Source of the DNA: Fonticula alba ATCC 38817
Lineage: Eukaryota; Protista; Nucleariida
Strand: one strand, 5' to 3'
Length of the DNA stretch: 14,494 bases
NCBI GenBank assembly: GCA_000388065.2
Contig: KB932202.1
Under the pieces are notes generated by a model. It searched no databases. It was not told where the DNA came from and saw only the letters and a list, made by a program, of their open reading frames with translations. The position numbers were made by a program, and so were the translations under genes. Positions 8,588-14,494 of the stretch are shown here, one piece after another. The first letter of the stretch is position 1; each line of letters opens with the position of its first letter.

Positions 8588-9321
8588 ACTGGTCAAAGCG
8601 TCAGACATCAAACCGTAGCCGGTGCTCCCGAAGCCGGACATGGCGCTGAAGCCCACGCTGCCCAGGCTGCCCAGGCTGCCCAGGCCATCGGTCAGCCCGC
8701 CAGACGAGGGAGGCTGGCTATGCTCGGCCGAGGAGGGCGGGTGACTGGAGCGAGTCGAGCGAATGCGCCGGGCGAAGGCCATCAGACCGGAGGAGGACGG
8801 CGACGTGGTCAGCTCTGCGAGGAGGCCGCCGGAGGCAGGGGCACGGGGGGGGGAGGGGGGGGGGCCGCGTGGGCGTGCGTGCGGGCGGGCATGCGGGCGT
8901 GTCAACATGCTTGTACATTGGCCAGACATAAGGGACAGGAGTGGTGGCACATACCGAACTGTGAGGGGATCATCTGCGAGGAGGTGGGGCTGGAGGGCAG
9001 CCCGCTGGAGAAGGAGGACGCAGACGTGGCCATGGCAAAGGGGACCGCCTCGGAGCCAGGGCTCGATGGTGCAACGAAAGTCGAGAAGGGGCTCGACGGC
9101 TCATGTGCTCCGGAGGAGGTCGGCAGATCGGAGGCCAACACTCCGGCCGAGGAGGCGGATGAAGGGGGAAGCATCATATGCCCCTCCGAAGAGGGGGGCT
9201 GCATCAGGACGTCGCCATCGGAGCCAAGGTTGTCGCTCTGGCTGTCCGGCACGGTCACCGCCGCCAGGGGCAAGCGGTCGGCCGGGGGAGGGCTTCCGCC
9301 GGGCGGGATGGGAGAGCTCAT
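8588..9321 (-). CDS. MCM4: Displaced 5' exons of MCM4 (Ser/Pro-rich N-terminal regulatory domain). complement(join(8588..8814,8955..9321)), 198 codons, ending in an open phase-0 donor
   Basis: Begins MSSP like animal MCM4 and is rich in SSP/SP motifs. Intron 8954-8815 (gtatgt...cgcag) is phase-compatible. It ends SDALTS|gtgcgt at 8588/8587 with no sensible in-frame acceptor downstream, but fits the phase-0 MCM4 acceptor at 14386. Confidence 0.7.
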
Positions 9322-9584
9322 TGGGCGAATGAGGCAAGGAGGGGAGGGGCAAGAGAGGGCGAAAGTTCTGTGAGGCGGGCCAGAGAGGAGATGGGGGAGC
9401 GGTGACGCATGTCTTGGCTACAACAGGCACCAACCAGGGTCGGGTGGCTTTATGCGTAGCCGCGAGGCCGTGGGTCCGGGTTGGGGAGGGGGCGTCCTCC
9501 CTCGGGCGCCCCATCGTGGCGGCAGCCCCCCAACAGTTGGAGGGCCGTGAACGAAAGTGGGGGGGGGCCACCTTCACACACCTC

Positions 9585-9733
9585 CACACACACACACACA
9601 CACACACACACACGCGCACACGCGCACACACACACACACACACACACATGCGCACACGCGCACACACACACACACACACACACACACACACGCACACACA
9701 CACATGCGCACACGCGCGCACACGCGCGCACAC
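9585..9733. repeat. 149-nt perfectly alternating pyrimidine-purine tract (CA/CG/TG)
   Basis: Direct reading: only CA, CG and TG steps in register, including two copies of cacatgcgcacacgcgc. Confidence 0.9.
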
Positions 9734-10283
9734 TCCGGGCGATCGGGATCAATCCCCAACGATATTTGCACACGCAAGATCGCCCCCCGAGGGATCGTGC
9801 AAGGCGGCCTCCTCCAGCGGGGGCGCATGTCCAGGCCGGAGAGAGGTAGGGCCGCTGGGTCTCTCGGGGCTCAGCCCTCCCCCCCCCTGCCCCCCGCCCC
9901 GTCCCACTCGAGGTGGCTTTCCCCACCACACAACGGCCACAACCAGAATGAGATTCAAAGATGGAGCACGGCACGCGAGAAAGTAACGGTGAAGTTGCGT
10001 GATCATGCGGTAAATGGGCATATAATCTGGTCATCCTGCTGCTGCCAATGGATTTGGGTCTCTGACACCACAAGCGGAGGGGGGCCTAGCCGGACACAGT
10101 CTGTCAGGCGCCTGGGGGCCGGGAGCCGAAACAAGGGAAGGGGGAGCGGCCACGGCGAGGGAGGGCAATGGGGGAGGGGGGAGCAGTGCCCAGTACGCCG
10201 GCCACCGGGGGCCACATTCCCTCGCGCCGGGTCCAGTATGGGGGCGCACGACGGAGAGATCAACAGGCAGCCCCCCCCCCCCC

Positions 10284-10728: not shown

Positions 10729-13700
10729 TCAAGTGAAGGTGATGCTGCTGTAGCCCGGAGGCACGATGGCAGCACCCTGCTCTGCCAACTCGAGAAGCGC
10801 CTCGCGGAAGGTGTCCAGGGTGAGCTCCTGAAAGGAGGGGAGAGAGAAAGAGAAAGGGAAAGGGAGGAAGGGGGAGGGGGGGGGGAGAGACAGAGAAGCA
10901 GGAAACACCAGCTGTTAGGCACCCATCGAGGCACATGGGGGCAAAGAAAGCTGGCAAGCGGATTCGCCAGCCAAAAGCGAGCACGTACCCGCTGGTTGTA
11001 GAAAGAGCGGAACTCGCGGAAGAGCAGGGCGAAGGGCCACGCCTGGCCAACAGCCGGGAGAGCCTGGCCGGAAGAGGCCCGAGCTCCCTCTTGCGAGCAG
11101 TTTTGCACGTAGGACAGGAGCCCGCGCACGATGCGGGGAACGGCCTCGCGCGAGGCCGCCGACCGGCCGGTGTATGCCAGGTCCAGATCCAAGCGCCCGG
11201 TGGCCGGGTCCAGGGCGTATGTGCGCAGGGCCGCCTTGTGCAGCTTCAGGGCCGCGGCCACATCATTCGGCGTGACGGTGTCCCCGAGGCGGAGCTTGGC
11301 ATGCGCCTCGGACAGACGAATCAGCGACTCCAAAGCCCGGGGCGAGGCAGTGAAGACGTTCTTGCCACCCATGGCACGAAGTTCTGGGGGCCCGGAGGAT
11401 GAGCGGGAGGAGGTCAGCAGAGGCACACAAAGGACAAATGCATGTCTCCCCCCCCCCCCCCTCTCGCTTGCTCGAACAAGGGGGGTCTCCTCGCGCGCTC
11501 CTCGCAAGAAAGGAAAAGGGAGGGACACGGCAGCAGGCCACACGCACCGACATAGCCGGCGATCAAATCCTGCCCAGCATCATCCGAGATGACCGGATGG
11601 ATGTGCTGCCGGGCATAGGCAATGTACGACGACAGAGTCATCGCATCAAGGGTCAGATCCGGCGCCTGGATATCCTCGGCCGAGGTGGTGGCCCGGGGCT
11701 GTCCTTGTGGCTGGTAGAGGCCAATAATGTGCTCAGCCAGGCGCCGATCACTGCGCGCATCCGGATAGTCCAGGATGATGTAAATCAGATCGAAGCTACA
11801 CCCGAAGGCACGGGGAGAGGGGGGGACGAGCAGACCAAGGCAAATGCAGGGAGGCAGAGGGGGAAGGCATATGCGCACAGCCGTGCGACACACCCGCGAT
11901 GGTGAGTGACACATGTGCAAGCACAGGCCCGAGGCGCAAGAGGGGACCATGCGTGGCCGCCCCGCCACCAGAGCCCTGGAAGGGAGGGGGGGGGGGGGGC
12001 GGACATGCAGCACGTACCGTGAAGTGAGCGACGGAGGGAGCTGGATGTTTTGGACAATCGACAGGGACGGATCGTAGCGGGACTTCACCGGATTGGCAGC
12101 AGCCAGGAGCGACGTCCGGGCATTCAGCTGGCAGATGATGCCGGCCTTGGCGATAGACACCGTCTGCTGCTCCATCACCTCATGGAGGACTGAGCGTGCG
12201 GACTCGGACATTTTGTCGAACTCATCGATGCAACAGATGCCGCCATCCGAGAGGACCAGCGCACCACTGATTCAGAGGCCCGCCAGGGGACGAAAAAAAA
12301 AAGAGACAGAACAGAAGAAGATGCCGGTGAGATTGCTGTGGCTGCCGGTAAAGGGCGGGGGTGGGGGGGGGGGACCAAAAGGTGGGCACGAACCTCTCCA
12401 AGACAAAGAGGCCAGTCTCCGGGTCACGGGTGACGTAGGCCGTCAGACCGACGGCCGAGGACCCCCGACCAGAGGTGTAGATGCCGCGCGGGGCGATCTG
12501 GTGGACATAGCGCAGGAGTTGGGACTTCGATGTACCGGGGTCACCGCACATCAGGATGTTGATGTCGCCACTGGGTTGCGAAGACAGCACGGCCGGAGGT
12601 TAGGAACCGGGCGCCGCGTGAGCGTGAGAGGCTGGGGGGCCGGAAGATGGTGCGTGTGTGTGTGTGTATGGGGAGGGGGAGGGAAAAAAACACACCGGAA
12701 TCGGCCACCACCCACTCGAGTGAATGTCTTGTGTGTGCCGCCGACCAGCTGGCAGAGGAGGCCGCGTTTGACATCCTCATGGCCATGAACCGAGGGGGCC
12801 AGGGATCGGGTCAGGACGTCGAGCACGTCCGGCCGGGCACCGATAGACACCAGCCGCGGCTTGATGGCCTCCGGGATGAAGACCGGCGGCCGCTCGTTCT
12901 GGGGGTCCTGGCCCTTGCTGCAGGACAGAAACCCCGGGGGGGGCGGGGGGGGAGCACGGGGGGGGGGGGAGAGGGAAGGTCAGCATAACGGCGGAGTCCT
13001 AGGCCAGCAAGAGAAACACAGCAGAAGAAGGCAAGGGAGAGGCGGAGAAAGAGGGGGATACAGACGGAGAAACGACAGCATGGCTGCGGTGGCGCACCTG
13101 TCTGCTGAGGACGTGGTGAAGGTGGAGCTCTGGCGATCCACCAGGCGGTAGTGCAGGACATCTACATATGTCCGGTACACGGAGCGGTACACCCGCTCGC
13201 GTGGAGACAGACGGATGGGCGCCGCACGATAGATGCCGGTCACCTCGACACTTGAGGTGGCAGGTGGCAGGAAGGACCCAAAGCGCGGAGGGGGAAGAAA
13301 AAGCATGTCAGCCGGCGAGCCAAGTCTCTGCGAGCGGGGGCGGATTCCAGGTGTCGCACCGGTCACCAGGACGCGGGACGTCAACATTGTCGTCGAAGGC
13401 CACCAGCGACACCGTGTGAGGTGTCTGGCCGTGGGGGATCTCATCTGGAGGCAGGAGAGCCGAGAAGGAGGTGAGAGAGGGCCCAGATGGCGAGACCTAT
13501 CCCCGCGGCAGAAGCCGACAACCGGGGCACAAGAAGCACAAACCCCAAGCCACACACAGGGAGGCACACGAAGCACGAAGGCGCACCTGGGGTTTCCTGA
13601 ATTCGAACCAGCTGCTTGTCGGCATACTCACAGCGGTTGTACACCAGCTCCATGGTCTGGGAGCTGTAGCAGCGCGGGCACCGGGTCGGCTCGGTGATGC

Positions 13701-14385
13701 GGCCGCCCGACTCGGCGGCCACGCGCGACGAGAAGTGGCACACCGTGCACCGGAAGAAGGCGGTCTTCAGGTCGGGAATGACCGACCCGGTGCGAATGAC
13801 CAGGCCGCGGATGGACACCAACTTGTCGATATCCCGGGGATTGAGAGCGCGCAAGTCACACCGGTTCTCCAGGTTGAAGGGCCGGACCTGGACCCGAGGC
13901 AGGGACTCGTGGTCCGGGCCGATGGCCCGGCCGAAGCGAGCCGAGCACAGCTGGCTCACGCACTCCAATGCCACGGCGTCCATCAGGGACACCACTTCCC
14001 GGGGGTAGGTGAGCAACTGGCGGTAGAGAGTGCGCGAGGCGTCCGAAAATTGCCGCAGATGGGCGCAATTCAGCGACAGAACCGACACCGGGCCTGTCGA
14101 GGCCGAGGCCGACAGGCCTCGATTCACCACCTGGTCCAGGAGCTTGGAGTAGTAGGGATCCGGCCAGGCGGCGCCCTCCAAATCCGTCGGGTCATGGTCC
14201 GGCATGCCGGGGGCCGGGGCCGTGAAGTCCCGAAGGAAGGTGTGGAAGGCACTCCAGGCATCACGCAGGTGGATGGTCGTCCCCCAGATGACCGACTGGG
14301 CGATCGAGTCGTCCATGTCTCCGGTGCCGGCCGGCGTCGGCTGCGAGGCGTCACTGGGGCCGGGGGTTTGCCCGGCCGCGGGGTC
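10729..14385 (-). CDS. MCM4: DNA replication licensing factor MCM4 (Cdc54/Cdc21), 5'-partial in this position. complement(join(10729..10827,10989..11383,11548..11795,12018..12266,12394..12570,12696..12917,13098..13250,13360..13444,13587..14385)), 808 aa
   Basis: MCM4-specific VIWGT; [18 protein letters not shown]; zinc finger C-X2-C-X19-C-X2-C; [16 protein letters not shown]; Walker [13 protein letters not shown]; [10 protein letters not shown]; Walker B IDEFDKM; arginine finger SRFD; [21 protein letters not shown]; winged-helix C-terminus. All eight internal GT-AG introns keep frame. A branch-point-like ccctaac and a cag acceptor precede 14385. Confidence 0.96.
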
Positions 14386-14494
14386 CTGTATCCAGGAGGA
14401 AAGAGCCCCCGACGCATGGGGCAGGCGGAGTTAGGGCGCTTTGCGGGAGTTGCCGGGCGTGGGGCGCCAAGAAGGGGCAACACCCAAGGGGGGG

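Follow-up and report, generated by a model that had tools for sequence, protein, structure and literature searches.

Does Fonticula alba, an opisthokont protist, carry the gene for the replicative helicase subunit MCM4 in two pieces that stand in the wrong order, or does the permutation exist only in its draft genome assembly? The stretch of DNA analyzed here (the window, 14,494 nucleotides) corresponds to bases 2512289-2526782 of scaffold C2 in an assembly of 31.3 Mb and 214 scaffolds; it is interior to that scaffold, and its right edge is a sequencing gap, not a scaffold end. Exons 3 to 11 of MCM4 (E3-E11) run through the window on the minus strand and have no start codon, and exons 1 and 2 (E1 and E2), which supply one, are located 1.4 kb beyond the stop codon on the same strand. 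The internal evidence from the assembly makes it very probable that this order is a misassembly of an ordinary, collinear gene of 11 exons.

The exon model was rebuilt by script on unique anchors within the window and has GT-AG at every exon boundary. E1 (9321-8955; all MCM4 coordinates are on the minus strand) starts with MSSP from the ATG at 9321, encodes 122 amino acids plus one nucleotide, is rich in serine and proline, and ends at the donor gtatgtgc. E2 (8814-8588), which is also Ser/Pro-rich, ends in a phase-0 donor (AGT/gtgcgt, the slash marking the exon boundary). Together, these exons comprise 594 nt, or 198 amino acids, and their phase-0 end meets the phase-0 acceptor gatacag/GAC at the start of E3 (14385-13587). 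The following exons are E4 (13444-13360), E5 (13250-13098), E6 (12917-12696), E7 (12570-12394), E8 (12266-12018), E9 (11795-11548), E10 (11383-10989) and E11 (10827-10729), the last of which contains the stop codon. The region 10729-14385 thus encodes the N-terminal domain, the OB fold with its zinc-finger cysteines, the AAA+ core, the lid and the C-terminus, and is followed by the 3' untranslated region and downstream non-coding DNA (10728-10294), which show no codon periodicity. Apart from intron 2, the introns are 109-222 nt long. Arranged in the order E1 to E11, the exons yield 1006 codons without a stop. The initial annotation had described the same permutation, with E1 and E2 past the stop codon and a joined frame of 1006 amino acids, and the rebuilt model reproduces it.

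Database searches were run exon by exon, and the joined model was analyzed by script for frame and composition. E3 matches the Pfam families MCM_N (E-value 1.7e-9) and MCM_OB (1.6e-21); the MCM P-loop domain (PF00493, positions 7-223) extends across E6-E9, and MCM_lid is found on E9-E10. The translation of E3 carries the zinc-binding cysteines CTVC...CPRC, and the Walker A motif GDPGTSKS, the Walker B motif CIDEFDKM and the SRFD arginine-finger motif are present in the translation of the gene. A search of the PDB with E3 returns MCM4 as all of the top ten matches, with E-values from 1.8e-40 to 2.9e-34, and the next paralog, MCM6, follows at 1.9e-10. By these sequence matches, the locus can be assigned to MCM4 as opposed to MCM2, 3, 5, 6 or 7.

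The ten PDB matches to E3 start at residues 99-176 of the respective MCM4 proteins. E3 encodes 31 residues ahead of the VIWGT motif, and there is no in-frame ATG upstream of its acceptor; since each of the 29 full-length MCM4 sequences compared (cluster representatives that a full HMMER search with E3 returned) places no fewer than 65 residues in front of VIWGT (range 65-590, median 153), E3 needs upstream coding sequence. With E1 and E2 attached, 229 residues precede the motif, a value at the long end of this range. The two exons consist of 26% serine and 13% proline, with Ser, Thr and Pro together accounting for 44%, and they contain 3.0 [ST]P sites per 100 amino acids, compared with a median of 3.1 in MCM4 tails. 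The G+C content at third codon positions is 0.81 in E1 and 0.84 in E2, the remaining MCM4 exons ranging from 0.70 to 0.86, and no codon periodicity is detectable in the non-coding DNA that flanks E1 and E2. Of 138 retrieved MCM4 representatives with an initial methionine, 5 start with MSSP, as E1 does.

The disordered N-terminal domain of MCM4 usually shows poor sequence similarity between proteins. Neither E1 nor E2 has a match in Pfam or the PDB. Compared with 61 MCM4 tails in an uncorrected BLAST search, E1 scores no better than chance (66 of 200 shuffled sequences are as good). A similarity of E2 to the tails, which at 30.4 bits exceeded 200 of 200 shuffles, was dropped because composition correction gives an E-value of 1.3. 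The motif SP-hydrophobic-x-aromatic...SS occurs in 13 of the 61 tails and, in an imperfect version that is suggestive only, in E1; SDALT-like strings are found in few MCM4 representatives and carry no statistical weight. By length, composition and [ST]P density, E1 and E2 fit a Ser/Thr-Pro-rich N-terminal domain of MCM4, with no significant similarity to such domains, and would be physically linked to E3. Both the block with E1 and E2 and the region of E3 are present in a single copy in the entire assembly.

The piece that appears to be displaced is a block of 1708 bp (8576-10283, minus strand), which consists of an upstream region with a TG/GC microsatellite, E1, intron 1, E2 and a donor stub, and is bounded by homopolymers at both ends. 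The microsatellite, a long compound (TG)n/(GCGTGTGC)n repeat, occupies 9580-9745 and precedes the start codon of MCM4 by about 260-420 bp. A gap of exactly 10 N (10284-10293), flanked on the left by a C13 run, separates the upstream region of E1 from the 3' untranslated region of MCM4; the DNA is non-coding on both sides, and no reading frame crosses the gap. Other gaps of exactly 10 N are found elsewhere in the assembly (loci L019 and L020), a recurrence that fits a placeholder length. At the opposite end of the block, the 5' stub of intron 2 (8555-8587, minus strand) consists of 12 nt followed by a C14-G-C6 run, where a false join to the 5' region of an SHMT gene is proposed; the junction of the E2 donor, the C-run and the SHMT start codon contains no N. 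The 3' part of intron 2 (14386-14494, minus strand) begins with a C7 run at the contig end (14488-14494; the initial annotation had counted eight bases, 14487-14494) and continues for 102 nt to the E3 acceptor.

The sequence to the right of the window bears directly on the collinear order. A gap of 1520 N (L003:1-1520) begins at the first base after 14494, so that it abuts the C-run in which the half-intron upstream of E3 breaks off, and behind the gap follows the 3' end of RPN1; G/C runs flank the gap. The RPN1 gene, which encodes a regulatory subunit of the 26S proteasome (L003:1656-4823, minus strand; C2:2528438-2531605), is located directly upstream of this gap, and its 3' end runs into a C-run of approximately 15-20 bases at the gap edge. 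Each MCM4 breakpoint coincides with an N gap or a C/G homopolymer. Fifteen gaps were sampled over roughly 55 kb, comprising the window together with four flanking loci from scaffolds C2 and C7; 11 of them adjoin G/C runs, which implies that such runs regularly broke the assembly. The locus combines two features expected of a segment swap, namely, breakpoints that fall on gaps or in low-complexity sequence and, at the collinear position, a gap that suits the block in size.

The gene next to the displaced block is broken as well. The contig 7144-10283 contains, in addition to E1 and E2, the 5' half of a mitochondrial-type SHMT gene (7262-8546, minus strand; 293 amino acids) in four exons (8546-8457, 8352-8242, 8084-7804 and 7659-7262). 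Its ATG at 8546 lies 41 nt past the last base of E2, with no N in between, and is followed by a typical mitochondrial presequence. This half covers positions 29-255 of the Pfam profile, and the donor of exon 4 runs into a 277-N gap (6867-7143), beyond which the sequence does not continue SHMT. The 3' part, which covers Pfam positions 290-399 through the stop codon, is found on another scaffold (C7:527006-527335; within L012:1300-1830, minus strand), where a 2460-N gap and then a C-run precede it. The approximately 35 intervening positions (255-290) are present nowhere in the assembly, and a second, complete SHMT gene is located on scaffold C4. Because SHMT is split over two scaffolds, the contig 7144-10283 or its placement must be wrong, whatever the status of MCM4. 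A false join in a C-run would be expected to leave two neighboring half-genes of this kind, both of which break at homopolymers and gaps. The sizes favor placement of the SHMT 5' half on C7 over C2, given the 2460-N gap there compared with the need for about 1.4 kb and one missing exon. The TTC39-like gene beside the SHMT 3' half gives no anchor for this placement. That gene is an Iml2/TTC39-like fragment (L019:6219-8858, plus strand; C7:523518-526157), convergent with the SHMT 3' end, which covers Pfam positions 161-394 alone; its N-terminal part is presumably contained in the adjoining 4096-N gap.

Two other readings of the locus involve SHMT. The Ser/Pro-rich exons might not belong to MCM4 at all; they could instead serve SHMT as alternative 5' exons or form a small gene of their own, with the true 5' exons of MCM4 hidden in the gap. 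Joining the E2 donor to the acceptor of SHMT exon 2 (8352) indeed maintains the frame, phase 0 to phase 0, and significant homology to MCM4 tails is lacking in both E1 and E2. However, a phase agreement of this kind arises by chance in one case out of three, SHMT has its own start and presequence 41 nt after E2, and we know of no SHMT with a 198-residue Ser/Pro extension. Moreover, E1 and E2 resemble MCM4 tails in length, composition, [ST]P density and the MSSP start, and it would have to be a coincidence that an orphan pair of exons with a start codon occurs 1.4 kb away from an MCM4 that lacks one, both being on the same strand. A separate origin of these exons is, on balance, quite improbable.

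The second possibility is a simple exchange of contigs, in which 7144-10283 belongs upstream of 10294-14494 and SHMT is nested within an MCM4 intron 2 of several kilobases. No scaffolding error is commoner than the misordering of small contigs, and such an exchange would require no chimeric contig. The sizes speak against it: the 3140-bp contig is too big for the 1520-N gap, and the whole of SHMT, probably along with part of the TTC39-like gene, would need to fit into intron 2, which would then exceed 6 kb compared with 109-222 nt for the other introns. We consider this arrangement highly improbable. Contig reordering alone does not repair the locus because the junction 8555-8587 contains no N, so that one false join at a homopolymer is needed in addition. 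The initial annotation had ranked scaffold misordering at homopolymers and gaps first among the possible causes; this reading is supported by the 1520-N gap, the nature of the breakpoints, the broken SHMT gene and a second permuted gene described below, with the false join as a refinement.

If the two half-introns are joined, the rebuilt intron 2 consists of 12 nt, the C-run and 102 nt, that is, approximately 130-140 nt. C-runs of 7-14 nt are present in 5 of the 9 other MCM4 introns, two of them starting about 20 nt after the donor, and donors that begin with GTGCG are found both in E2 and in 5 of the 8 donors of exons 3-10. The rebuilt intron thus resembles the other introns of the gene, which supports the collinear order of E2 and E3.

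A second gene with permuted exons was identified on a different scaffold. The exons of eIF3e are arranged on the plus strand of C12:631250-632500 (L021:5250-6501) in the order C-D-A-B, where A and B correspond to positions 1-64 and 78-116 of eIF3_N, respectively, and the PDB matches of C and D are confined to residues 127-157 and 164-196 of human eIF3e. Gaps of 1605 N and 161 N lie before C and after B, respectively, and the junction between D and A is seamless and located inside C-rich and CTC-repeat low-complexity DNA. Thus, eIF3e displays the same rotation artefact as MCM4, with two gap junctions and one seamless low-complexity junction. Together with the division of SHMT between C2 and C7, it provides an independent sign of misassembly, so that such signs are found both on the contigs analyzed here and elsewhere.

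The same observation can be taken in favor of a genuine permutation, that is, an organism in which E3-E11 truly lie upstream of E1-E2 and an essential replication gene, perhaps along with eIF3e, exists in permuted pieces, with the mRNA produced from two transcripts of the same strand, either by trans-splicing or by a joining that resembles back-splicing. This is the sequence as assembled, its donor and acceptor phases are compatible, and eIF3e in the same genome also looks permuted. However, every permutation examined here breaks at an N gap or a low-complexity run, a pattern that would not be expected from biology. A search for complementarity between the two half-introns (109 nt on the acceptor side) finds a longest run of 9 nt, compared with a mean of 9.5 nt in shuffled sequences, 152 of 200 of which reach at least that length. 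In addition, the adjacent SHMT gene is broken too, and a gap of the right size is located at the collinear position. Such an order, if true, would represent a rare case of an essential gene that requires trans-splicing outside Giardia-like lineages; nothing in the present data supports it, and the chance that the assembled order is real appears very slight.

A partial duplication deserves somewhat more credence but is still improbable. Under this scenario, a functional copy of the promoter, E1 and E2 resides in the 1520-bp gap, the copy next to SHMT is a genuine second one, and the assembler collapsed both. The unread gap upstream of E3 offers enough room, the assembled copy of E1-E2 is intact and has good splice sites, and collapsed copies would appear as a single copy in the assembly. 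Nevertheless, this explanation requires an extra event plus the collapse, and leaves unexplained the homopolymer at the SHMT junction, the split of SHMT over scaffolds and the eIF3e rotation.

Misassembly of a collinear gene remains the preferred explanation because a gap sits at the position where the block is needed, the breakpoints are gaps or C/G runs, SHMT is broken, and eIF3e is rotated in the same manner. We infer that, in the true order, the 3' end of RPN1 is most likely followed on the minus strand by a C/G run, the 1.7-kb block (promoter, E1, E2 and donor stub), the C-run of intron 2, E3-E11 and the 3' untranslated region, such that the proper place of the block would be upstream of 14494. 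Long C/G homopolymers would have broken the contigs and acted as a short repeat with at least three copies in the locus. Two segments between copies of a repeat can be threaded in either order, and the assembler or a gap-closer may have chosen the wrong path. Such a path would have left the 1520-N gap at the proper place of the block and set the block after the 3' untranslated region behind the 10-N placeholder. The C-run end of the block would have been fused to a second C-run, which shortly precedes the start codon of SHMT. E2 would then be spliced to E3 in cis in the living organism, over an intron of approximately 130-140 nt, and the product would be an MCM4 protein of 1006 amino acids with a 198-residue Ser/Pro-rich N-terminal regulatory tail.

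Several observations weigh against this reconstruction. A false join inside a contig, at the junction of the E2 donor, the C-run and SHMT, must be assumed. The gap estimate of 1520 is 11% smaller than the 1708-bp block. A G-run forms the upstream end of the block, and a C-run on the same strand borders the gap toward RPN1, so that there is no simple homopolymer overlap at this end. There is no statistically supported similarity of E1 or E2 to other MCM4 N-termini; the assignment of these exons to MCM4 therefore relies on position, strand, splice phase, composition and the need of E3 for upstream coding sequence. Finally, neither the MCM4 or SHMT protein of this organism itself nor a transcript-derived fragment spanning E2-E3 was recovered by three word-index searches, which used E3, the open frame of E1 and a frame of an SHMT exon and whose length window leaves out annotated full-length models, or by the full HMMER search with E3. 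The protein searches returned foreign homologs alone, with identities of at most 58% for MCM4 and at most 76% for SHMT. A literature search on the quality of the assembly yielded nothing useful.

Some further features were noted in and around the analyzed loci. The contig 4561-6866 of the window, which is located between two gaps, contains coding-like sequence antisense to SHMT (plus-strand frames, e.g., 5344-6621) but has no Pfam match. The TMEM120 region on scaffold C4 (C4:577500-587499, L020) contains four gaps of 173, 10, 786 and 335 N, and the distance of 3.8 kb between the two TMEM120 exons that are detectable may reflect another local misorder. A DUF2415 gene was also located in the assembly. 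From its translation, we take L020:569-2141 (minus strand) to be a beta-CASP/CPSF-like coding region.

The numerous gaps at G/C homopolymers and the locally swapped segments of the draft F. alba assembly constitute a warning for its users. Gene models of MCM4, mitochondrial SHMT and eIF3e that are derived from it are prone to truncation or splitting, and any scrambled exons reported from this genome are best regarded as artefacts until a check against reads has been made.

Compared with known systems, the locus most probably presents an ordinary eukaryotic MCM4 (Cdc54/Cdc21), a subunit of the MCM2-7 helicase, with which it shares MCM_N, the OB fold with CxxC...CxxC, Walker A and B, SRFD and the lid. 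Eukaryotic MCM4 has an N-terminal serine-rich domain that is regulated by CDK and DDK, and the predicted tail encoded by E1 and E2 is typical of such domains in length and [ST]P density. No functional difference from eukaryotic MCM4 is apparent; the exon order in the draft assembly alone differs. The trans-spliced split genes of Giardia (Hsp90 and dynein heavy chains) likewise consist of non-collinear coding pieces with compatible splice sites. In these genes, base pairing between the half-introns is extensive, and reads as well as cDNA confirm the pieces. In contrast, the MCM4 half-introns do not pair above chance, and the breaks all fall at an assembly gap or a homopolymer. A further counterpart is repeat-induced misassembly, in which segments between three or more copies of a short repeat can be swapped and gap-closers can introduce false joins in low-complexity sequence. 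The same signature is observed here, namely, breakpoints at C/G runs and N gaps, a gap of matching size at the collinear position, one seamless homopolymer junction and recurrence in eIF3e, with the difference that the repeat is a homopolymer and not a dispersed element.

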